A DNA stretch of 64,000 nt from Iphione sp. A-MEVVRFRX5 (taxonomy: Eukaryota): contig OZ320315.1 in assembly GCA_976226885.1 (NCBI GenBank), positions 63,426,001-63,490,000 of the forward strand, written 5' to 3'. Under the pieces are notes generated by a model. It worked only from the letters and a program-made list of their open reading frames with translations, searched no databases and was not told where the DNA came from. Below, one piece after another: positions 1,114 to 58,779 of this stretch (its first letter is position 1; every line of letters starts with the position of its first letter). A program made the position numbers and the translations under genes.

Positions 1114-4100
1114 CTGTAAAGCTGATATTATTAATATAGTCCGGTTACCTCACACCCAAACGTGAGGTTGTACTGTACTCTCTTTGTCCTGATACGTTAC
1201 TGAGATACGTATATATAGGAAAACCTTGTCATTCTTCTGTCAAAGCCACACAAAAGGCAAAGAGCACCGGCTGGTACATTGTGAAGTATAGTCTGTCCTT
1301 CACCCCCATAAAAACGCTCTGCAGATCAGATCCCGTTAAAGGGTGGCTTTAGTGCGTAAAGACCGACGCGGATGGCATTGTTTGCCTTCAAGCAAGGACC
1401 TTTATCAAAGAGAAATCCATACAAATATTTCGCCGTAGTCTGAGGTTGGTGCACGCCTTATGTTCACCATCATCTCTACAAGAGATTTCAATGACACAGA
1501 ACACTGTTTTCCAGGTCCGTGTTTTGGGTAGTAAAATTCCGTCAATGCTAACCTGATCACTGGATACTCAAAGGACAAATTCATACAATTATTTTATACA
1601 CGATAGAAACCCTGAAATGAGACCAAGATTTGGGACGGCCCATGTATTGGCCCCGCAGGTTGTTCTATGCTGTGGGTTGGTTAAATATTGCTAGTATACG
1701 CTAAGGTCCTGAACGTCTCAAGAAAGGTTGCAAACAGTGGTCACTCTTTAACCAAGTCTCTACTGTATATATTCTTGATTGTTCGATATCGTTATGTTAC
1801 CAATTTTGACTTTTGATTCCGACAGAACAGGTAGACATAACATAAATGACTGATTCCACCAATAGATGTACCAAAATGTATTCTCTGGGACTGTGTCTTT
1901 TTGTTTTTTTTAGTAAAAATATATTTCAATTGATATTTTATATATCTTTTGCTATGGCTTGGTCTAAGGGATATGAGGAAGTTGTAATAATATTTTTAGC
2001 ACTATAAATAATTTCCTCCTGTAGTTTTCAGTAGTCCTGGAGAATACCGCTGGTACATCTATTGATATTTCTAATCAAATATGTAGTCTTGAACATTATA
2101 TCCAATTGTCTAAACCGTTGAGGCTTCAATCGGCCCAGTTGGCTTGAAAGTACTACAAGCCTTCTAATGAGATCATCCTGGGGGCCATAAATTGATACCT
2201 GGACCCAGATAGGAGAGCAGCCAATAGGGACACACAACCACTTCTGAAATGACTTGGACCTGCAGTACACCTGATGCTACCACTGAGCGAAGCCACGTAC
2301 TCCGGTAGACCACACCGGGCTTTCTATTAGCCTATTGTGCCTGACACTATCCTAACATTGGTAACACTCCTGTTTCTTTCATAGGTGAGGACCTGCCAGG
2401 AAATTGGGGTGACGGAAGGCCTTCAGGGGAAGAGAAGACCTGGGCCTCTTGGTTAAAACATATTAAGTGTCTTGCAAGTGTGGGTTTGTGGGTGGGTTGG
2501 TGGTCGGGTCGTTATGACAAATCAAAGCAGGATTGCGGAGGAAAATGCACCAGGAAACATGCTGCGGGAAATGTCCAGCGGAAATAACCAAGAAAAGGGT
2601 GGTGTGGGATGGGTGGAGGGCATGGGAGTAGGGAGAACCAGAAATGCTATCAAGGCAAGCATGGGTGGCTGGATAAGGGTCAGCTGGCGAATGGAGTGAG
2701 TAGTGACCGAGAGCAAGAGTAGATGTGGATATGACATCGTCCGGTAGAACCCAGTGGTCAAACTCGACACTTGACGGAAAACCTATCTTGAAGTGCACAT
2801 AACGAGATATATGGTTCCCCTACCACCACCGTACGCATGCGCCGGGCTAAGATGGAACTCTCTACAGAACCCAGGGGGCGGTAGAATGGTTTCTACCATT
2901 TCGGGACAGTTCCTACCGAATCTGCTTAACTAAAGCTATCAAATACGGTTTTCCTTGGTTTTCCCTTTCTCCAAGGATATGCAGAAGTCCACGAGACAGC
3001 CTTGCCGCCAAAGGGAGTGGGGTTTAGCGCGGTGCGAGTTAGAAATGTAGACTGGTAGAGGATGCGGTGGATGTATCTATATATGTATGTTTGTGTGTGT
3101 GGGGGGGCAGAGGTTTCTCAGGAAGGCAGCCTAAATCGCCACCTAACGGTGTTAGCTATAGTGAGAAGGACGGCTGGGCGGACAGGGCTCTTGATCAGAA
3201 TTGCAAATGGCAGGACATTTAGACCAAGCCCCGCTGAAAACGGGACGGACTGGATCCGTATAAATTGGACTTAGATCCAGGTTGCTGTCCTACTCCGTCC
3301 ACGCAATTGCCTAGTTGACAGGCAACTATCACTGGGTGTAACACCTCGCGCATTCTTATGCCGCTCGTGCCCCAGGTCCTCCTGACAGAGGGAGAACCGG
3401 GCGCCTCTGTGAAAGTATGGAAAAGGGTATCCAAGCATAGAGTTACTAGCTGGTCGGTCCCCCTTAAGTAAAAGCCAGTATATTCTAACTCGGTCGCCAG
3501 CCGCTGCTGTCGTACCGTCCCGTTGTTGATTCGCCTGATTCAAGGGGTTATAATACAAATGGGCAGGCCTAGATCGGCCCACTGTAAACTCATGGTAGTC
3601 TTTGCTTTATGGAGTCATTTCCTCCTGCATAAGCCTCCCCTACTCCACTGGACTTGGCTGGTCCAGTGCTTCCTGACAGTTACCGGGATTCATACATTGG
3701 TCAGTTGCGCAAGGCCTCGTAAGGAGCGCTGCTGCCTCTTGGTGGCGCTGGGATGATAACCACAGCGCCCTCTAGTGGAATCTAACCTGCAAAACGCTGG
3801 CAGGCAACGCCTCCGTCTGGGCGGGCGTCGCACCAACTGGCGATATAGCGGCAGCCTTTGCAAACTCATTGAATGTGTTGTTCTCGCTCCTTCAACAACG
3901 CGGCTCTGCCTATACGTCCCAACACAACCTAATACCATCGTAGCTGCCTCCTTCCTCCTTCTCCTCCAAGCACGTGGTCTATAGCCGAACCATCTACCAC
4001 CGCCACCTCCTCCTGCTTTACTCTACAAGGCGTGATGCCATTGTAGGCATTGTGTAAGTGGAGGATATCGGCCATTTGGTCGCACAATAGACCTGCTTCA

Positions 4101-19682: not shown

Positions 19683-20298
19683 GGCCGGCATTCCATATAC
19701 ATGGAAAACGTCTCCAGAGCACGGAGACCGTCCGGAAATTTAGCCAGTTTTCCCTTATCTCCGCACAGGTGCTTTCCATGTGTGCTTGCATGTGTGCGTG
19801 CGTGTGTACGTGCATGCATGCATGTATGTATGTGTTTCACTTCACTTCACTTCAAAGACAGAGAGAGAAATTGTGCGTTTTTTCATGGAGTTTGAAGCAG
19901 ATCAGTGGAAATTGTGCAGTTTTTCATGGAGTTTGAAGCAGATCGGTGGAAATTGTGTGGTTTTTCATGGAGTTTGAAGCAGATCAGTGGAAATTGTGCA
20001 GTTTTTATCCAAATGATATGCAAATTACAAAATAATGCACAACATCTGTCATGTGACAGACAGTGTCTGTCCTGCTCCAAACCTCCATGTCTCTATTCTA
20101 CTGGCCTCTGTGGGCCTCCGGAGTCCGTGCTACGGAGAAATTTATGGCCCGGGTCCGTTTTCGGCCCACGAACCCAGGCCACGGACCCACAGACCCGTAC
20201 ACATGGGTGACCCTCTGTTAAAACCAGTGAGTTGTTTTTTTTCCGCATTTCTGTGTACCTACTCCGGACACGTTTTCCGTATGCATGGAAAGCCGGCC
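19683..20298. mobile_element. Non-autonomous PIF/Harbinger-type MITE, 616 bp
   Basis: 39-bp imperfect TIRs (GGCCGGCATTCCAT... and ...ATGGAAAGCCGGCC, 31/39 matching) flanked by TAA on both sides (19680-19682 and 20299-20301). A 3-bp TAA/TTA target duplication is typical of PIF/Harbinger. Confidence 0.75.
19868..20006. repeat. 41-bp tandem repeat, about 3.4 copies, inside the MITE
   Basis: Unit AAATTGTGCAGTTTTTCATGGAGTTTGAAGCAGATCAGTGG starts at 19868, 19909, 19950 and 19991. Confidence 0.95.
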
Positions 20299-33500: not shown

Positions 33501-33853
33501 TCTCTTCTCCTGCATAACTTGAACCTCCGAGGGCCACATTGTGTGTATTTCGTTGCATTTAGGTGGAATCTCACCTTCACAGACCGTGAAGCCCCATTTA
33601 TATTTGGCTGGTTTACTGGGTTATTTTCTTTGAACATAGACACATCCATAAAAATTTTTGTATGTCTTGTGACATGTCACCATCCAACAGATATGCTTTA
33701 TATTATGTACCTGTAGGGTTCATAAGAACATATCATTTTTCAAAATTGTTTGAACAAAGTTCAATGGAAGTTTGTTCTATCATGGTTCTCTCTCTCACAC
33801 TCTTTTTCCTTTTTTGTGTGTGTTAATCACGTTGCAAGAGAGGGGACGACGGG

Positions 33854-33978
33854 TTTAACTACGAAATTGAGTGAAAAGTCCCCAGGTTTCGACACGATAG
33901 CCCGAGGGATGGGCCGATAGGCCCATCCCGAGGGATGAGTGTTGAAACCTGGACTTTTCACGAAATGTAGTGGTTAAA
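33854..33978 (+). mobile_element. Long imperfect hairpin with GA/GA mismatches; probable end of a decayed non-autonomous Crypton-like element
   Basis: GTGAAAAGT..AGGTTTC..CAC-GA..CCC-GA-GGGATGGGCC-[GATA]-GGCCCATCCC-GA-GGG..GA-GTG..GAAACCT..ACTTTTCAC-GA. It is followed by CCGCCATCTT (34128-34137) and CCAATCA (34160-34166), the same motif order as in the array elements. Confidence 0.6.
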
Positions 33979-36659
33979 TTCGGTTCTAAAATGGTTATAT
34001 TTGAACTAATATTATAAGTAATATAATATTATAACTAACCTTTTACATGGCTTAAATTATCCATATTTTGCCCTTTGAAGTGGTTCCCCTACCACGTACA
34101 GCTGCTTCCCTCCATTTTCAAAACAAACCGCCATCTTAGTGTCATGTGACCTCTCTCATCCAATCAGATTTCAGGAAATGCAATGAATATTGATTACTCC
34201 CTCCTTGACCAATGAGCTACCACGTTCTGCTCTAATGAATATTTATACAGTGACTAGTCCACGGTTTCAATATGTTTCTTCAATGTTGCGAGTATTGCGG
34301 CGTCACGCCGAACCATTTTAGAACATTCCTTCAAGGCTGTGATGGAATCGATCTAAGACTCGCATGTAAAAAGGAAACAGGCATTGGCTGGCATCACTTG
34401 TCACTAAAAGCCATCGGACAAGCCGAGACGAGGTTATCTGGGAATCAGTACCCCACCAGCTCGGCACCGAAGCCTTATTCCGTCCCCATCCGATTCCTAA
34501 GCCTTTCAGAAACATCCTGCCCTCTACAATACCAAATAGCTCTGCCACCCTTGCACCAGACAGGTAAAGAAAGGATTGGGAGCGCTTGCCATGTAGGAGA
34601 ACAGGCCAAACGTCGCCATGGCAACGTGTGGAAACTCAAATGTTTGCAATGTGACGTGGTATTTGGTGGAGCTATCACTTTGGCTATCGAGGCACCGGAT
34701 GTAGCTTCTGCAAATTTTGATCTTTTCTAAAAGTGCCGCTTTCTTATGTAGCCACCTCAGAAAGCTGAGTCAGCTTCATCACCGGCCTGACTCTGATTTG
34801 TCCGTCTGTGTGTTTGTGTGTCTGTCTGTCTCCCTCCCATCCACGCCCTCTTTTTACTTGCATCTCGTTCACCCCTTGAGATTTTTCTGTGTCACGTTCC
34901 CGTTTTCTCCTTCTTTTACGGAAACACACACGCACATACACGCGTAAACACACACAAGAACACACAGCGGTGTGGGACTTTTAATACATGCTGGTCTATC
35001 ACCTGACAAACAGTGCAAATACAAAAATTTCAATTATCCCTACCGTACATGCCATACATATAGAATTTTTTCTTAATTGGGGACCGATCTCAGCAGAGTT
35101 AACAAGAATAGTTGTCAACGTTAATTTCTGTAAAGTAGGGATAATGATATCACTGTAGATAATTATGTGCTTCTAAAAAAGAAGAGATACAACGTAGAAG
35201 GGCAGTACACGTTTTACCCTTGCAAATGCACTCGATATGTCAAAAGAAATATAAAGTAAGAGAGAAACACTGGAAGAGTCTTAGAGGTTTTATTTACTTT
35301 TAAAGGTGACTGTCTGTCGTCATATTTGGGGAGACGCACAGACGCCCTCTCAGGAGAGATAGAAAACGAATAAGCGTGCGCAAAATACAGCAAGCTGTCT
35401 CTGGCAGAGCCCAAGGACACCAGCGCCACCTACCGAAGTTGGTGTCATGCTGGCAACACGTCGGGTAGATTAATTTACCCCCCCCAGTAGGTGTCCCTGC
35501 GATCGATCGCTGTTGCCCTAGGCTCTTTTTTCAGCCCCCACCGTTTGCCGTGCCCCCTCCCATCCAATCCCCCCTAACAGGTAGGTAGGTAGGTTGGCGG
35601 CAGCAGGGGTGTTCGTGGTTGGTTGGCAGAGGCTGGCGGCAGAAAAACGACGCGTTTGGTGAAGAGTATTATTTCCACAGTGATTTTTTTCTCTTTCACC
35701 TTCACTCTGACCTTCATGTCTGGGATGATGCTAAGCATCTGGAGCGTGGTAATCCTTCTACCTGCTTCCAACCTTGCAACTGGAGGACTGAAAAGGTAGG
35801 TCGGAGAGGGGAAGGTGTATCTGTGTGACTTTATTTTGGCAATCCGTTCTCAAAATTGGTTTTATCTATCATGCTGCAACAATCCATATATATTCATGCG
35901 CTGACGTCTAGCGTGTCGGAAACAAAGGTTGCTAAACTGATAATATCCTTTTAATGACGATCATATTTCTACTAGTTAGCCGTCCAGTTGGTCAGGCTAT
36001 TTACTTTCAGAGTCGATATAGCTGGGATGTGTAGAAATGACTCCTGAGAGTTAACAATATCGCCGGACAAAGATTTTTCCATGTTCCTTCAGTTTAGTCA
36101 ATCTATATACCCATATCTTAAATTATTTCGTCAGTTTTTAAAGTTACTCCTCTAACCTTCAAAGTGACACAGAAACCCAAGTGGAGAGTTGTACGAACTA
36201 ATGTCAACCAGCGATTTAAATACGATTCAGTAAACCAGTGTTTCAGTTAACAGCTAAAACGGAAATAAATTGAAAGCTAGACTCACGTTCTCCTCGCTTA
36301 TGATCTTTTTCTTCTGAGACCTACATAGTATATTCGATGAAAAAGGTTTCTTTTAATCTCCTTTGTTCGCTGCTGACAACCCTGAGTGGATTGCACGGTT
36401 TTTAGCTCTACTCAATATTTAGTCCAGATACTTGTGTGTGGAGAAAGTTAAACTGAGAGAGAGAGGGGGGAGGGAGGGAGGGGAGGAGGGTGGGAGGGAT
36501 TTAGAGAGGGAGGGAGGGAGGAAAGGAGGGAGAGGGGAATTGTTTTGTGATCAGACAATGTTCCTTTGGGGAATACATGTACCGTAGAATCCCGCCACAA
36601 CGGACATCGACGGGACTGGCACCAGGTCGTCCGTTGTCGGGGGTGTCCGCTGTGGCCGA

Positions 36660-49506: not shown

Positions 49507-50047
49507 ATGATATCCACCTGTACATGTAAATGAGGGCACCGGATATGTGGGTAAGTGCGTGTGCTTGAGTGTTGGGCGCCGTTTAATGGTGCCCTCTACA
49601 GGTGAGGAGAGAACCCATTAGCGATGGACGCAGAGAGACCGAGGCCCAATTAACCCAGGAATGAACGCGCGCGGGCAGCCTCGTTATGAGAGCAATGATA
49701 AATAGGGCGGTGCAGGGCCGACAGGCGGATGGCCCAGTGATACATGCCAAGCCACGACGTCTGACGGATTGCCGCACCACTTCCAATGTAACCTGTGAGC
49801 CTCCGGCGCATGCGTAGTTTAATGATTTGGAGGCAAGAGGAGGGGGGCGGCGTTGGGGTGGGGTGGGATGGCTGATAGATTGGTGTATATTATGGTTTGT
49901 GGTTAAGCATAGTTGGCATGACTATTAAGGTCAAGGTAAGCGGTCAGCATCAGTAGCTTGGCTACTTTCAGTCTGGAGGTGTTATTAGTCTCTGGTCATA
50001 GGGACTTAAACTTTTAAGTATTGCCATCTGCCCCTCGGACCAAAGGG

Positions 50048-50193
50048 ATTAGCGATGGGAACCTACTACGAGTGCCAAGGACTCAGCGCGAAGCCCGAGA
50101 GGCTTGGTCCAGTCTGCCGCAGGCAGACGGGACCAAGCCTCGAGGGCTGAGCGCTGAGTCCTTGGCACTCGTAATAAGGTTCCCATCGCTAAT
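50048..50193 (+). other. 146-bp terminal hairpin, copy 1 (65 Watson-Crick pairs, G.A mismatches, GCA triloop)
   Basis: Paired by hand from the outside in: 17-bp stem, bulged A, 1 bp, C.A, 23-bp stem, tandem GA/GA, 5 bp, tandem GA/GA, 12 bp, A.G, 7 bp, loop GCA (50119-50121). Confidence 0.95.
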
Positions 50194-50598
50194 TGCTGTT
50201 CTGATATGGTTTTATTCACATTAAAATTAGCTAATTCAAAGTGAAAATCAACCTTCGCTTACTTGGCCGCCATCTTGAGTATCTAGTCTCATTCAGTATA
50301 GAAGCTGCAATTCTATTGGCTAATTCAAAATGCGTAATTATTTTTTTATTTTATCTACAGTACACAATTTCGTTGTATTTTTAATTGTTATGTAATAAAA
50401 CAGTTTTTAAAACAGTTCAATATTTTTATTGTCCACATTTGATGAACTTTATCCAGTATGTGAAAAAAAGGATTTTCATTATAACATGACATTGCGTGAT
50501 CATAACATGTGGCGCCAACTAACAACTCCGCCAAGTATACTGCGTAGTTTTCACTGGAAAGGAAGCTGTGAAAGTCACATTGTGATAGTCAATATGAT

Positions 50599-51701
50599 TT
50601 ATCTGAAGTTAAATGTGCAATTATTGAAAGTGTTGGATCCAGAAAGAAGGGCTGCCATAGCATTCACAGTGGTGGATGCACTCGGTTCTCTTGTAGACTG
50701 TGTCGACAGCATCACGCTTGATTCCGTTGTGACAATTTCCCCCTCTGATGACGAGTGGCTGTATGTTGCTAATGTTTTCGACATCTCTCGGCGGACTTCT
50801 GAGGTGACTCCTCCTCTGTAGACATCAAGTGAGGCTGCACTCTTGTGTCCCGTGATCGCCTGGATTTTTTCGGATGAGAAGCCTGCGACATCTAACGCTG
50901 TAACACAAGTACGCCGAATACAGTGATTCGTGTACTGTTTGCTTAGGCCTGCATCAACACTCATCTCCTTCATCATGTTGTGAAGGGTGTTCACTCCAAG
51001 AACTTGATTGGCGAACCAGGGACCATCTCCACTTGGAATGGACTTGTTAGGACGTTGGAAGAAGAATTCATTGTTCTTGTTCAACTTTGCCATATATTTC
51101 TGGAAGTGTCTGACTGGACATCGACTTGGATTCCCAGGAGTTTCATACATTCTTCTATCAGTGTCAGACTCATCATCGTTGAGCCCAGACTTTGTCTTTT
51201 CCGCCTCCCAGTGCGTCATGGTTACGTACTTGGCACCGGATCCATCTTCCTTTACCTCGAATGAATTCTTCTTTAATTGGCGGAGTCCCTCTCTACCACG
51301 TCGTCCGTAGTGGAGCATGATTTCGAAGAAAACTCTTCGTTGGAGCCCTTTTGGTGTGTCTGTGAAGGCGTGAGTATAGAGCTTCTCAATGTCCTCAGGG
51401 TCAATTAATTCTTTGTGAGTGGTACGATCCAAACCTTCATTACGTAATTTGGCAAGGTAACCTGAATAAGTTGCGTTGCTCTGACGAAAAGCTGTATCTG
51501 TCAAAATGTTGATTCTGCGGTTGTGTGGGGGGCTGCAAAGGTGGCGTTGTATGCCTGCACGAATGTTCTTCATGGCAGATTTACTGTAGAATTCGCCAGT
51601 CTTGCTACGCACAACTGTATAAAACTGCTCAAGTTTTATAGCCAATATATCATCATCCAAGTGCTCAAAGTTACTGTCATCACCGACCTCTACAAGCCAC
51701 T
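50599..51701 (-). CDS. Crypton tyrosine recombinase (DUF3504-like), exon 2, copy 1
   Basis: Acceptor tttccAG at 51703-51702. The spliced frame gives TKWAVRIFKEWL...FYTVVRSKTGEFYS. Catalytic set present: GRRGRE (R), NHCIRRT (HxxR), TGHKS (H), LDVY (Y). Total 484 aa. Confidence 0.9.
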
Positions 51702-51853
51702 CTGGAAATATATATAAACGGGAAAATAATAATGGTTAGGGAATTCCTTTATTCTTTTCCCTCAAAAATACAAACTCCACATCGCTAAGGCATATTTTTG
51801 ACAACGTTTTTGTGATGTTTGCTTGCTTTCTAAGAGAAGGAATTCTCATTTAC

Positions 51854-52205
51854 CTTTGAATATGCGGACTGCCCACTTAGTTTGCAGTTCTGTACTGTGA
51901 CGGGTACGGTTCCTCTTCATTTCGTCTATTTCAGCCTCAGATGGCATGTGGAATCTCTTCTTTTCCTCATCTTTTTCCTCTTCTGACGTTGGGGGGCTGG
52001 CTGGGCATGCACTTTCATTCATTTCAACGTCATCAATTTTCTCCAGCTGCTCACGGTTCGCAGTCTCCTTCTGGTTAGTTTCAACATCTTCAATCACAAA
52101 GAGGTGGTAGGGGAAGATCGTTGGTCGATATTTGGAGATTACCAGAAATATTCTGTCCTTAAAAAGCACTAAATCACCGATTTCAATGCTCTGTGACTCT
52201 GCCAT
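51854..52205 (-). CDS. Crypton tyrosine recombinase, exon 1 (117 codons plus 1 nt), copy 1
   Basis: ATG at 52205 and donor AAAG|GTAAAT at 51853; a 152-nt intron joins it in frame to exon 2. Confidence 0.85.
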
Positions 52206-52300
52206 TGTGTATGTTAAAGATCGTCTGCTATTGTCGCTCCCCTGTTTTTAACCAATCAGAGTCCACAGAATAGCACTTCCGTTTCCAGTGTAAACAATAC
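52206..52300 (-). promoter_or_regulatory. Putative promoter of the recombinase gene
   Basis: CCAATCA box and tandem ETS-like CACTTCCGTTTCC(A/G)G directly upstream of the ATG; the same in the other copies. Confidence 0.45.
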
Positions 52301-52698
52301 GAACGTTGCACACTTTTTCCTGGATTAAGTGAAATTATTGCTTTCTTTGCACTGAGCTATGTACAAAACATCACATCTTATGTACCAAGGTTCTATAGGT
52401 ATAATACTTTATCATTATAATTATTTAAAATGATTTTAACCTTGTCTGAACATTTGAAGCGGTGAACAAAATGGCGTCTTTCTGCTTCCCATTCATTCAG
52501 AGAACAGGTGCGTTTGATTATCCAATTAAATTTTATGTTACTTTATGGAATGTGTGCTGAGCCATCTGACCCGTTCACTCAATTGGCAATGCTATAAGAT
52601 AGCAGTATCACTCCCCACCATATTAGAACTTCTGACAATCCAGCTGACTGCGCAGATCTTGAACATTTGTGAATTTGCTTTCTACTTGGGCCAAAGGG

Positions 52699-52844
52699 AT
52701 TAGCGATGGGAACCTACTACGAGTGCCAAGGACTCAGCGCGAAGCCCGAGAGGCTTGGTCCAGTCTGCCGCAGGCAGACGGGACCAAGCCTCGAGGGCTG
52801 AGCGCTGAGTCCTTGGCACTCGTAATAAGGTTCCCATCGCTAAT
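52699..52844 (+). other. 146-bp terminal hairpin, copy 2
   Basis: Same sequence as 50048-50193. Confidence 0.95.
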
Positions 52845-53249
52845 TGCTGTTCTGATATGGTTTTATTCACATTAAAATTAGCTAATTCAAAGTGAAAATC
52901 AACCTTCGCTTACTTGGCCGCCATCTTGAGTATCTAGTCTCATTCAGTATAGAAGCTGCAATTCTATTGGCTAATTCAAAATGCGTAATTATTTTTTTAT
53001 TTTATCTACAGTACACAATTTCGTTGTATTTTTAATTGTTATGTAATAAAACAGTTTTTAAAACAGTTCAATATTTTTATTGTCCACATTTGATGAACTT
53101 TATCCAGTATGTGAAAAAAAGGATTTTCATTATAACATGACATTGCGTGATCATAACATGTGGCGCCAACTAACAACTCCGCCAAGTATACTGCGTAGTT
53201 TTCACTGGAAAGGAAGCTGTGAAAGTCACATTGTGATAGTCAATATGAT

Positions 53250-54352
53250 TTATCTGAAGTTAAATGTGCAATTATTGAAAGTGTTGGATCCAGAAAGAAG
53301 GGCTGCCATAGCATTCACAGTGGTGGATGCACTCGGTTCTCTTGTAGACTGTGTCGACAGCATCACGCTTGATTCCGTTGTGACAATTTCCCCCTCTGAT
53401 GACGAGTGGCTGTATGTTGCTAATGTTTTCGACATCTCTCGGCGGACTTCTGAGGTGACTCCTCCTCTGTAGACATCAAGTGAGGCTGCACTCTTGTGTC
53501 CCGTGATCGCCTGGATTTTTTCGGATGAGAAGCCTGCGACATCTAACGCTGTAACACAAGTACGCCGAATACAGTGATTCGTGTACTGTTTGCTTAGGCC
53601 TGCATCAACACTCATCTCCTTCATCATGTTGTGAAGGGTGTTCACTCCAAGAACTTGATTGGCGAACCAGGGACCATCTCCACTTGGAATGGACTTGTTA
53701 GGACGTTGGAAGAAGAATTCATTGTTCTTGTTCAACTTTGCCATATATTTCTGGAAGTGTCTGACTGGACATCGACTTGGATTCCCAGGAGTTTCATACA
53801 TTCTTCTATCAGTGTCAGACTCATCATCGTTGAGCCCAGACTTTGTCTTTTCCGCCTCCCAGTGCGTCATGGTTACGTACTTGGCACCGGATCCATCTTC
53901 CTTTACCTCGAATGAATTCTTCTTTAATTGGCGGAGTCCCTCTCTACCACGTCGTCCGTAGTGGAGCATGATTTCGAAGAAAACTCTTCGTTGGAGCCCT
54001 TTTGGTGTGTCTGTGAAGGCGTGAGTATAGAGCTTCTCAATGTCCTCAGGGTCAATTAATTCTTTGTGAGTGGTACGATCCAAACCTTCATTACGTAATT
54101 TGGCAAGGTAACCTGAATAAGTTGCGTTGCTCTGACGAAAAGCTGTATCTGTCAAAATGTTGATTCTGCGGTTGTGTGGGGGGCTGCAAAGGTGGCGTTG
54201 TATGCCTGCACGAATGTTCTTCATGGCAGATTTACTGTAGAATTCGCCAGTCTTGCTACGCACAACTGTATAAAACTGCTCAAGTTTTATAGCCAATATA
54301 TCATCATCCAAGTGCTCAAAGTTACTGTCATCACCGACCTCTACAAGCCACT
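53250..54352 (-). CDS. Crypton tyrosine recombinase, exon 2, copy 2
   Basis: Same translation as copy 1. Confidence 0.9.
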
Positions 54353-54504
54353 CTGGAAATATATATAAACGGGAAAATAATAATGGTTAGGGAATTCCTT
54401 TATTCTTTTCCCTCAAAAATACAAACTCCACATCGCTAAGGCATATTTTTGACAACGTTTTTGTGATGTTTGCTTGCTTTCTAAGAGAAGGAATTCTCAT
54501 TTAC

Positions 54505-54856
54505 CTTTGAATATGCGGACTGCCCACTTAGTTTGCAGTTCTGTACTGTGACGGGTACGGTTCCTCTTCATTTCGTCTATTTCAGCCTCAGATGGCATGT
54601 GGAATCTCTTCTTTTCCTCATCTTTTTCCTCTTCTGACGTTGGGGGGCTGGCTGGGCATGCACTTTCATTCATTTCAACGTCATCAATTTTCTCCAGCTG
54701 CTCACGGTTCGCAGTCTCCTTCTGGTTAGTTTCAACATCTTCAATCACAAAGAGGTGGTAGGGGAAGATCGTTGGTCGATATTTGGAGATTACCAGAAAT
54801 ATTCTGTCCTTAAAAAGCACTAAATCACCGATTTCAATGCTCTGTGACTCTGCCAT
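54505..54856 (-). CDS. Crypton tyrosine recombinase, exon 1, copy 2
   Basis: Same as copy 1. Confidence 0.85.
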
Positions 54857-55349
54857 TGTGTATGTTAAAGATCGTCTGCTATTGTCGCTCCCCTGTTTTT
54901 AACCAATCAGAGTCCACAGAATAGCACTTCCGTTTCCGGTGTAAACAATACGAACGTTGCACACTTTTTCCTGGATTAAGTGAAATTATTGCTTTCTTTG
55001 CACTGAGCTATGTACAAAACATCACATCTTATGTACCAAGGTTCTATAGGTATAATACTTTATCATTATAATTATTTAAAATGATTTTAACCTTGTCTGA
55101 ACATTTGAAGCGGTGAACAAAATGGCGTCTTTCTGCTTCCCATTCATTCAGAGAACAGGTGCGTTTGATTATCCAATTAAATTTTATGTTACTTTATGGA
55201 ATGTGTGCTGAGCCATCTGACCCGTTCACTCAATTGGCAATGCTATAAGATAGCAGTATCACTCCCCACCATATTAGAACTTCTGACAATCCAGCTGACT
55301 GCGCAGATCTTGAACATTTGTGAATTTGCTTTCTACTTGGGCCAAAGGG

Positions 55350-55495
55350 ATTAGCGATGGGAACCTACTACGAGTGCCAAGGACTCAGCGCGAAGCCCGA
55401 GAGGCTTGGTCCAGTCTGCCGCAGGCAGACGGGACCAAGCCTCGAGGGCTGAGCGCTGAGTCCTTGGCACTCGTAATAAGGTTCCCATCGCTAAT
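55350..55495 (+). other. 146-bp terminal hairpin, copy 3
   Basis: Same sequence as 50048-50193. Confidence 0.95.
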
Positions 55496-55900
55496 TGCTG
55501 TTCTGATATGGTTTTATTCACATTAAAATTAGCTAATTCAAAGTGAAAATCAACCTTCGCTTACTTGGCCGCCATCTTGAGTATCTAGTCTCATTCAGTA
55601 TAGAAGCTGCAATTCTATTGGCTAATTCAAAATGCGTAATTATTTTTTTATTTTATCTACAGTACACAATTTCGTTGTATTTTTAATTGTTATGTAATAA
55701 AACAGTTTTTAAAACAGTTCAATATTTTTATTGTCCACATTTGATGAACTTTATCCAGTATGTGAAAAAAAGGATTTTCATTATAACATGACATTGCGTG
55801 ATCATAACATGTGGCGCCAACTAACAACTCCGCCAAGTATACTGCGTAGTTTTCACTGGAAAGGAAGCTGTGAAAGTCACATTGTGATAGTCAATATGAT

Positions 55901-57003
55901 TTATCTGAAGTTAAATGTGCAATTATTGAAAGTGTTGGATCCAGAAAGAAGGGCTGCCATAGCATTCACAGTGGTGGATGCACTCGGTTCTCTTGTAGAC
56001 TGTGTCGACAGCATCACGCTTGATTCCGTTGTGACAATTTCCCCCTCTGATGACGAGTGGCTGTATGTTGCTAATGTTTTCGACATCTCTCGGCGGACTT
56101 CTGAGGTGACTCCTCCTCTGTAGACATCAAGTGAGGCTGCACTCTTGTGTCCCGTGATCGCCTGGATTTTTTCGGATGAGAAGCCTGCGACATCTAACGC
56201 TGTAACACAAGTACGCCGAATACAGTGATTCGTGTACTGTTTGCTTAGGCCTGCATCAACACTCATCTCCTTCATCATGTTGTGAAGGGTGTTCACTCCA
56301 AGAACTTGATTGGCGAACCAGGGACCATCTCCACTTGGAATGGACTTGTTAGGACGTTGGAAGAAGAATTCATTGTTCTTGTTCAACTTTGCCATATATT
56401 TCTGGAAGTGTCTGACTGGACATCGACTTGGATTCCCAGGAGTTTCATACATTCTTCTATCAGTGTCAGACTCATCATTGTTGAGCCCAGACTTTGTCTT
56501 TTCCGCCTCCCAGTGCGTCATGGTTACGTACTTGGCACCGGATCCATCTTCCTTTACCTCGAATGAATTCTTCTTTAATTGGCGGAGTCCCTCTCTACCA
56601 CGTCGTCCGTAGTGGAGCATGATTTCGAAGAAAACTCTTCGTTGGAGCCCTTTTGGTGTGTCTGTGAAGGCGTGAGTATAGAGCTTCTCAATGTCCTCAG
56701 GGTCAATTAATTCTTTGTGAGTGGTACGATCCAAACCTTCATTACGTAATTTGGCAAGGTAACCTGAATAAGTTGCGTTGCTCTGACGAAAAGCTGTATC
56801 TGTCAAAATGTTGATTCTGCGGTTGTGTGGGGGGCTGCAAAGGTGGCGTTGTATGCCTGCACGAATGTTCTTCATGGCAGATTTACTGTAGAATTCGCCA
56901 GTCTTGCTACGCACAACTGTATAAAACTGCTCAAGTTTTATAGCCAATATATCATCATCCAAGTGCTCAAAGTTACTGTCATCACCGACCTCTACAAGCC
57001 ACT
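55901..57003 (-). CDS. Crypton tyrosine recombinase, exon 2, copy 3
   Basis: As copy 1 except GLNNDESD instead of GLNDDESD; catalytic residues intact. Confidence 0.9.
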
Positions 57004-57155
57004 CTGGAAATATATATAAACGGGAAAATAATAATGGTTAGGGAATTCCTTTATTCTTTTCCCTCAAAAATACAAACTCCACATCGCTAAGGCATATTTT
57101 TGACAACGTTTTTGTGATGTTTGCTTGCTTTCTAAGAGAAGGAATTCTCATTTAC

Positions 57156-57507
57156 CTTTGAATATGCGGACTGCCCACTTAGTTTGCAGTTCTGTACTGT
57201 GACGGGTACGGTTCCTCTTCATTTCGTCTATTTCAGCCTCAGATGGCATGTGGAATCTCTTCTTTTCCTCATCTTTTTCCTCTTCTGACGTTGGGGGGCT
57301 GGCTGGGCATGCACTTTCATTCATTTCAACGTCATCAATTTTCTCCAGCTGCTCACGGTTCGCAGTCTCCTTCTGGTTAGTTTCAACATCTTCAATCACA
57401 AAGAGGTGGTAGGGGAAGATCGTTGGTCGATATTTGGAGATTACCAGAAATATTCTGTCCTTAAAAAGCACTAAATCACCGATTTCAATGCTCTGTGACT
57501 CTGCCAT
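57156..57507 (-). CDS. Crypton tyrosine recombinase, exon 1, copy 3
   Basis: Same as copy 1. Confidence 0.85.
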
Positions 57508-58779
57508 TGTGTATGTTAAAGATCGTCTGCTATTGTCGCTCCCCTGTTTTTAACCAATCAGAGTCCACAGAATAGCACTTCCGTTTCCGGTGTAAACAAT
57601 ACGAACGTTGCACACTTTTTCCTGGATTAAGTGAAATTATTGCTTTCTTTGCACTGAGCTATGTACAAAACATCACATCTTATGTACCAAGGTTCTATAG
57701 GTATAATACTTTATCATTATAATTATTTAAAATGATTTTAACCTTGTCTGAACATTTGAAGCGGTGAACAAAATGGCGTCTTTCTGCTTCCCATTCATTC
57801 AGAGAACAGGTGCGTTTGATTATCCAATTAAATTTTATGTTACTTTATGGAATGTGTGCTGAGCCATCTGACCCGTTCACTCAATTGGCAATGCTATAAG
57901 ATAGCAGTATCACTCCCCACCATATTAGAACAGATTGCATGCATTATCACTGATTATCATGAAATGTAACCATTTTGGTAGTTACCATGATACTGGTTTA
58001 TTCCTTATTTCGAGGGAACCAGGACTACACCAGTTAACTTGTACATATAGTTGGTTTGATCCCGTTGAGCCATCGATAGAAGGTGCATTTTCATTTAATA
58101 AATGTAAAGATATAATCAAACCTGATACAGTATCAATCTACAGTACTAAACAGAGTAACCGGTGTACCGGTCTGCCTGAATTGTTCACAGGAGTGCACAG
58201 GAGCCTACACGATGTAAACAGTCATCAAGAACCATTATCCCTGCTGAAACCAAGCAAGTGGCGGATCACCAGGTAGCAACCTTCTGGTCTGGCGGTAAAG
58301 CCATGCAAGAGCTTTCAGATTGAAACAGGCTAAACAACACTGCCATTGCAACATAGAAGGCCATGCGTGATAACCTGTACAAAACCTTAGCTCCATGTAC
58401 CACACCATACCGCTCCCCCCCATTTTAGTGCTACCGTGATAAAAGCCAATCGATACGCTCTCCATGCGGAATTTCATGTAGGATAAAGAAATTTTAACTA
58501 GATGAGATCAAAGTGCACTTGTTTCGATACAAAGGGAACATGCCAAGTGAAAATAAACGACGATGCAAAGCCAAGGTTCTTCCCTGCAAGGTCATCCAGT
58601 TCGTGACAACATGGTCCTGGCGATACTTTCATGCCATGTACAGGCAAATATAGCTTGCCTGGCTAGATTTCACTGTAAGGCAACCCATTTATTCTCCCAT
58701 TTTCGTCAATGTAATTATGAACACTACTAGGTCAGAGATATTAGATATTTGATATTCTCCTTGTTAAACAAAGCCATAC

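Follow-up and report, generated by a model that had tools for sequence, protein, structure and literature searches.

To our knowledge, accounts of how Crypton transposons move have not gone beyond a model, the ends of these elements are described as lacking features, and no single-stranded stage is known for them. As reported, Cryptons have no terminal inverted repeats and carry only 4–6-bp direct repeats at their ends (PMC3212892). Neither that study nor PMC13465315 describes a hairpin or palindrome on Cryptons, which are said to lack inverted repeats. Additionally, our full-text search of the literature for Cryptons with a hairpin, palindrome, stem-loop, or cruciform found nothing relevant.

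At the attP site of CTX-phi, the substrate of XerCD is a forked hairpin that the single-stranded phage genome forms. Similarly, the integron integrase IntI acts on attC as a folded single strand; this site measures 57–141 nt, its binding boxes lie in the stem, and extrahelical bases determine the choice of strand (PMC5027507). Moreover, GCGNAGC and GCGNNAGC form extraordinarily stable DNA mini-hairpins that melt at ~76 °C as DNA versus ~39 °C as RNA. Hairpins of the GCGNAGC type bind SSB poorly and resist nucleases; in nature, they are found where single-strand priming takes place in phage G4 and at ssiA, and also in the hairpin promoters of phage N4 (PMC13037366). The d(GNA) loops need a C-G closing pair (PMC3201870).

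In this study, we analyzed a 64-kb window, that is, the whole stretch of DNA considered here, in which a long palindrome opens a small Crypton element, and compared it with related loci. The hairpin looks like a DNA-structure signal used in transposition that is new to the literature.

Hairpins and Crypton elements in the window

The preliminary description had noticed an imperfect palindrome of 146 bases (Table 1). Folding and parsing gave a stem of 65 Watson–Crick pairs, in which the mispairs of the + strand are two 5'-GA/3'-AG tandems, one single A.G, and one C.A, the latter being a G.T wobble on the − strand. Five G.A mismatches are thus present on the + strand, tandems included. One bulged A lies close to the base, and the loop is C-GCA-G. 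Apart from the wobble, these features had been noted before and were confirmed. When both strands were folded with DNA parameters, the + strand, which carries the G.A pairs, was the stabler one (−82.1 versus −78.9 kcal/mol); dinucleotide shuffles had a mean of ~−24 kcal/mol (z ~−19), and 0 of 200 were equally stable. RNA parameters gave the same strand asymmetry (−137.9 for + versus −132.6 for −). In single-stranded DNA, both tandem G.A steps and GNA loops confer great stability, and only one strand of the palindrome has them.

The hairpin opens each unit of a head-to-tail repeat of a 2651-bp unit, which runs from 50040 to 57931. The unit begins 8 nt before the hairpin, which agrees with the distance to the left element end given in the preliminary description. 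We refer to the element opened by this hairpin as W1 and to its 2590-bp sequence as E; the array has the layout E-j-E-j-E, with three copies of E and two 61-bp segments j. The three hairpins are identical, and the three copies differ at two positions only, which argues against a collapsed repeat. The array starts exactly at the hairpin end and stops exactly at the third far inverted repeat. Moreover, the inverted-repeat motif of W1 has 8 matches in the window versus 0.27 expected, and all of them lie at the predicted places. At both junctions, an identical segment j fits exactly between the terminal repeat of one copy and the tail of its neighbor. The segment j matches neither outer flank of the array, and neither j nor the flanks are similar to the remainder of the window. 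It might be flanking DNA of the donor that a circle brought along, or target DNA from between two insertions that unequal crossing-over later amplified.

Table 1. Features of the W1 array and of the miniature element W2 in the window
Feature	Position	Strand	Details
W1, element copy 1 (E)	50040..52629		2590 bp; opened by hairpin copy 1
8-nt tail, element end to hairpin; candidate crossover/overlap segment	50040..50047	+	repeat identity starts at 50040; tail lengths elsewhere: 4 nt in the L046 family, 9 nt in L031/L033
Terminal hairpin, copy 1	50048..50193	+	two G.A tandems, single A.G, and C-GCA-G loop on + strand
Inner inverted repeat, 13 bp, 4 nt from hairpin base	50198..50210	+	12/13 complementary to far terminus
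Promoter-like cassette	50266..50319	−	YY1-type AAGATGGCGGC 50266–50276 and CCAAT box 50315–50319, reading towards hairpin
Predicted Crypton tyrosine recombinase gene, 484 aa	50602..52205	−	exon 1 52205–51854, exon 2 51701–50602; Pfam domains, homologues, conserved columns
Far-end terminal inverted repeat, copy 1	52617..52629	+	pairs with 50198–50210; array ends at its third copy (57931)
61-bp junction segment j	52630..52690, also 55281–55341	.	between complete copies
Element copy 2	52691..55280	−	hairpin 52699–52844, inner repeat 52849–52861, far repeat 55268–55280
Element copy 3	55342..57931	−	hairpin 55350–55495, inner repeat 55500–55512, far repeat 57919–57931
W2, miniature non-autonomous relative, ~483 bp	33842..34324	+	left end approximate; hairpin, repeats, cassette
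W2 hairpin	33850..33982	+	two G.A tandems and C-GATA-G loop
W2 inner repeat, 13 nt	33983..33995		directly after hairpin; perfect inverted copy at 34312–34324
W2 cassette	~34127..34230		YY1-type AAGATGGCGGC motif and CCAAT boxes; block common to W1 and W2

The 484-aa recombinase reported earlier on the − strand proved to be encoded by a two-exon gene. This is the sole gene of the 2651-bp unit, which contains no reverse transcriptase or other enzyme gene. In Pfam, the protein matches DUF3504 (2e-13) and Phage_integrase (2e-9). In an alignment of 25 sequences, H259, H285, and Y294 are invariant, R133–R136 and R262 are nearly so, and these residues are held in the motifs RRGREG, NHCxR, GH, and Y. 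Collectively, the two domains and the conserved HxxR, H, and Y columns identify the predicted protein as a CryptonA-type tyrosine recombinase. On the − strand, AATAAA signals precede the hairpin by 237, 157, and 23 nt, so the W1 hairpin probably lies outside the recombinase mRNA. The YY1/CCAAT cassette of W1 is located between these poly(A) signals and the hairpin, and a second YY1-like/CCAAT pair is found upstream of the recombinase ATG (~52250–52475). Elsewhere in the window, a 41-bp unit forms three to four tandem copies that are 91–97% identical (19867–20006).

The preliminary description had missed that the second hairpin of the window is not an unrelated sequence; it opens W2, a relative of W1 with the same design. 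No recombinase remnant was found near W2 by tblastn or with a profile HMM. Judged from its sequence, W2 is a non-autonomous Crypton derivative that has retained nothing but the hairpin, the repeats, and a short cassette. The window contains four long inverted repeats in all, and every one of them belongs to these hairpins.

Hairpin design among related loci

Of the 88 loci that we fetched, 80 came from a metagenome scan and the other 8 were retrieved through exact protein look-up; most of the loci are metagenomic contigs. The loci were scanned for long hairpins by script, and the candidates were folded on both strands. The recombinase homologues are at most 50% identical to the window protein. 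The sequence extends 1300 nt or more past the recombinase match at 25 loci; 18 of these contain a hairpin of 100–190 nt downstream, and one further locus has it upstream. The same design is present in the brittle star Amphiura filiformis (L088, 5670–5828) and the clam Mercenaria mercenaria (L087, 5727–5905). Between families, the stem sequences are unalignable, yet 85–95% of the positions are paired.

In the 23 hairpin families located beside homologous recombinase genes, 30 of the 34 two-by-two internal loops are GA/GA or the complement TC/TC (binomial p ~5e-47 versus a 2% expectation, a value that overstates independence because some families are related), and the context of the tandems is always Y-GA-R. 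Triloops of the form C-GNA-G (GAA, GCA, GGA, or GTA) cap 13 of the 23 families and C-GATA-G caps two, all on the G.A strand; where a hairpin has both tandems and such a loop, they lie on one strand (12 of 12 cases). On the G.A strand, the apices read GCGAAGC, GCGCAGC, GCGGAGC, GCGTAGC, CCGAAGG, or C-GATA-G, always with a C-G closing pair. Additionally, the G.A strand is the stabler one in nearly all folded hairpins with tandems or a GNA loop, and very few G.T wobble pairs occur on either strand of the stems. The G.A bias that the preliminary description wanted tested across homologues therefore holds, and the mismatch types are clearly not random. With 30 of 34 two-by-two loops being of this kind across 23 families, the hairpin design is not due to chance.

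The YY1/CCAAT cassette was considered as a conserved partner of the hairpin and rejected, because it is found only in W1 and W2 and is absent from 17 other hairpins and from the elements of other species. A hairpin is lacking in families L063–L069 and L042–L044, whose 3' boundaries are defined, and over a distance of 4 kb in L001. In L041 (16–69) and L045 (2841–2894), a more distantly related homologue of the recombinase is preceded by a 54-nt near-perfect palindrome with no G.A steps.

In L029 and L002, the hairpin lies downstream of the gene and the G.A strand is the gene-sense strand. For L029 (2489–2648), the two inner GA/GA steps and the GAA loop are on the gene-sense strand and the outer step is TC/TC, a pattern such as would result if the two arms had recombined and thereby flipped the inner portion. 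For L002 (6705–6829), the hairpin is of the same design, with a GAA loop and a purine–purine triple mismatch. It lies 1.7 kb downstream of the Crypton recombinase gene and 7 bp before a 485-aa DUF7869 ORF that shares its strand. The DUF7869 gene was dismissed as a shared feature because it has no counterpart in the window or at the other loci.

Element ends and explanations of the hairpin

Read 5' to 3' on the G.A strand, the architecture is a tail of 4–9 nt, a hairpin of 100–190 nt, an inverted repeat of 12–17 bp, the body, and the matching repeat, which lies 0–3 nt from the other element end. The hairpin is terminal in three multi-copy families, whose flanks diverge 8 nt (window), 4 nt (L046/L047/L049), and 9 nt (L031/L033) past it. 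Contigs that end 2–8 nt past a hairpin were not counted as showing termini, since assemblies break at palindromes. In addition to W1, a repeat abutting the hairpin with a partner at or near the far end is found in W2 (13/13), L046 (13/13), L054 (17/17), and L038 (18/20), and the same arrangement is seen in L086, L088 (12/12), L064 (13/13), and L062 (14/15). The search for inverted repeats was unsuccessful in L003, L004, L006, L012, L033, L040, L073, L085, L074, L028, L029, and L002. Two further arrangements were observed among these families. In L031 (3071–3280), an L033-type element ends at 3071 and an inverted L046-type hairpin follows ~92 nt on, which places two Cryptons tail to tail. L046 (2461–3135) and L049 (196–871) have 675 bp of identical 5' flank and different 3' flanks, which suggests repeated insertion beside, or co-mobilization with, another repeat.

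Compared with W1, L064 and L062 carry the gene in the opposite orientation, and the order of tail, hairpin, repeat, body, and repeat on the GNA strand is unchanged. This indicates that hairpin polarity is tied to the element end and not to gene transcription, which points to a role of the DNA rather than of the mRNA. The DNA-level reading is also favored because GNA loops with a C-G closing pair favor DNA and wobbles are almost absent. The preliminary description had proposed a structure selected for one strand at the DNA level and acting as an attC-like substrate or an origin. The first part is borne out by the predominance of GA loops, the constant strand of the loop, the terminal position in three families, and the polarity that follows the element end; the attC-like or origin part lies outside this outcome and is weighed below.

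On balance, we consider it somewhat probable that the palindrome is a cis-acting DNA structural element at a CryptonA-type terminus, which would work in transposition by forming a recombination site and not in the mRNA. A more specific version, which we hold tentatively and as falling short of probable, is that animal Cryptons use a structure-gated site, in which the palindrome would leave the B-form to assemble the core site, and the G.A tandems and GNA cap would mark the strand or arm used.

With extrusion, recombinase binding, and cleavage sites placed as we infer them, the recombinase would bind both inverted repeats. In B-form duplex, the inner repeat would be 150–190 bp from the element end. 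Extrusion of the palindrome into a cruciform, as might occur in a supercoiled circle after excision, or its folding on a transient single strand would loop it out, and the inner repeat would come to lie beside the tail and what follows it, which is the flank in an integrated copy and the other repeat in a circle. In other words, the palindrome would act as a structural gate, since the inner repeat would reach the terminus only on extrusion or folding. For L046, the circle junction with the hairpin looped out would consist of 12 bp, 7 nt, and 12 bp, which corresponds to the usual core-site format of tyrosine recombinases, and the crossover would fall in the tail. The G.A/GNA design might make the hairpin of one strand unusually stable and geometrically distinct from its T.C-mismatched complement, thereby giving the site polarity.

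Several observations stand against this looping-out model. The looped-out spacing varies from 7 nt in L046 to ~8 nt in W2 and 12 nt in W1, and the W1 junctions add the 61 bp of j (73 nt). Inverted repeats were not detected in several families, two families with defined ends have no hairpin, and L029 and L002 carry the G.A strand as the gene-sense strand. Moreover, no short direct repeats were seen flanking the copies or at the junctions, which counts against the model because a simple conservative crossover would give them.

Two other uses of the palindrome were considered and rejected. A classical core site with the crossover at the palindrome center does not agree with integrated copies that keep the whole palindrome at one end. 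A junction of the hairpin-telomere or protelomerase type does not agree with head-to-tail units that have one palindrome each, the center of which is an odd, asymmetric triloop.

Head-to-tail arrays of hairpin-bearing Cryptons are also present in L004/L005 (ENA ERZ25069853 ctg20619c, 17.9 kb), with a period of ~3203–3215 bp, and L085 contains two hairpin-bearing units head to tail; tandem arrays thus recur in this Crypton group. Arrays from three unrelated sources (the window, L004/L005, and L085), together with an array start precisely at the hairpin end, could also reflect a replication or priming signal, which we regard as unlikely. The hairpin would then serve an extrachromosomal circle, which might be single-stranded, as its origin or as a site that primase recognizes, and the arrays would be integrated rolling-circle concatemers starting at the hairpin end. 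The priming sites of G4 and ssiA contain mini-hairpins of exactly this type, which are resistant to SSB and nucleases (PMC13037366). However, the 2.6-kb unit is without a Rep/HUH or polymerase gene. Cleavage by tyrosine recombinases leaves a 5'-OH and a 3'-phosphotyrosine, which are unable to prime synthesis. Furthermore, the array does not stop randomly but exactly at the far inverted repeat, as recombination at defined ends predicts.

The conserved base of some stems bears on whether the hairpin is a true attC-like site, a reading that appears quite unlikely, in which the folded stem of one strand would form the boxes near the G-WTTAR base and a single strand would be exchanged and then resolved by replication. 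The stem-base motif GG|G(A/T)TTA(A/G) is kept in W1, W2, L003, L004, L006, L012, and L033, which belong to one subclade. The strand-specific design, a candidate crossover point a few nucleotides outside the stem base, and arrays that look like cassette arrays are likewise consistent with such a site. In contrast, extrahelical bases, which set the strand choice of attC (PMC5027507), are not a conserved feature here; the single bulged A of W1 is not conserved across families. Additionally, the clearest inverted-repeat pair lies outside the stem, and stem length exceeds that of attC by a factor of three to five.

A role in RNA is distinctly unlikely. A transcript through the palindrome would yield a long hairpin RNA that regulates the element through small RNAs, 3'-end formation, or protein binding. 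The RNA folds of the W1 hairpin are indeed very stable, tandem G.A pairs are stable in RNA too, and the promoter-like YY1/CCAAT cassette of W1 and W2 points into the hairpin. However, this cassette would transcribe the T.C strand and not the G.A strand, it is absent in other species, and the polarity goes with the element end, being reversed with respect to the gene in L064/L062. In an RNA structure, GNRA tetraloops and some G.U wobbles would be expected, whereas the loops here are GNA triloops or GATA and very few G.T wobbles occur on either strand. An Rfam 15 covariance-model scan of the whole window gave 0 matches at the gathering score. Moreover, the DNA form of such loops is far stabler than the RNA form (PMC13037366).

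Finally, a palindrome without function, whether a by-product, a generic genomic palindrome, or an assembly artefact, is disfavored and very improbable: many short contigs do end at the hairpin, which assemblers can cause at palindromes, but the design is conserved across phyla with unrelated stem sequences, the three window copies differ at two other positions, and the four hairpins are the only long inverted repeats in the window.

Significance and comparison with known systems

Crypton transposons and folded-DNA recombination sites are both known kinds; what is new here is a G.A/GNA terminal hairpin with an inverted repeat on Cryptons. The architecture of end, hairpin, and inverted repeat offers concrete substrates with which a Crypton recombinase from a eukaryote could be studied biochemically for the first time. 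Should the hairpin function in its folded form, the action of tyrosine recombinases on single-stranded or cruciform DNA would not be confined to bacteria. If the structure-gated reading of the site is true, eukaryotes would have their first counterpart of the folded-DNA recombination known from attC and CTX-type sites, with the strand marked by a different code. Additionally, G.A tandems and a C-GNA-G cap beside a short inverted repeat form a search signature for Crypton ends and miniature non-autonomous derivatives, which current annotation misses.

Similar to described CryptonA elements (PMC3212892), the elements here have a single tyrosine recombinase gene with DUF3504 and Phage_integrase domains, no reverse transcriptase, a small size (2.6 kb), and animal hosts. 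In contrast to described Cryptons, they have 12–17-bp inverted repeats, one of which is displaced inward by a terminal hairpin of 100–190 nt, and no flanking direct repeats were seen. The subterminal hairpins of IS200/IS605 and the 3' hairpins of Helitrons are likewise strand-specific end-recognition signals located a few to some tens of nucleotides from the end. They differ in that their transposases are HUH enzymes (Y1/Y2) with 5'-phosphotyrosine chemistry and their hairpins measure 16–40 nt; no HUH (Rep/Y1/Y2) transposase is encoded by W1, the only protein of which is the tyrosine recombinase. The W1 loop C-GCA-G shows the characteristics of the stable mini-hairpins, namely a GNA/GNNA loop, a 5'-C…G-3' closing pair, and a G+C stem. 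The known examples are phage and plasmid priming sites and N4 promoters, whereas here the motif caps a 55–85-bp stem in a eukaryotic transposon.

For CTX-phi attP, the likeness is a tyrosine recombinase site that exists only in folded DNA, with mismatches that give polarity. However, the folded stem of CTX-phi itself forms the XerC/XerD sites, and its DNA is a packaged single strand. For integron attC (IntI, folded single strand; PMC5027507), the likeness extends to a small gene-carrying unit bounded on one side by an imperfect palindrome, strand-specific non-Watson–Crick or unpaired features, a tyrosine recombinase, head-to-tail arrays, and a crossover near the stem base, which here is a candidate one. 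In contrast to attC, the strand here is marked by G.A tandems and a GNA cap, the stem is longer, the host is eukaryotic, and neither of the two candidate binding repeats of 12–17 bp is part of the stem; one adjoins the hairpin, and its partner is at the far end. Collectively, the proposed site would resemble attC in logic, not in detail.
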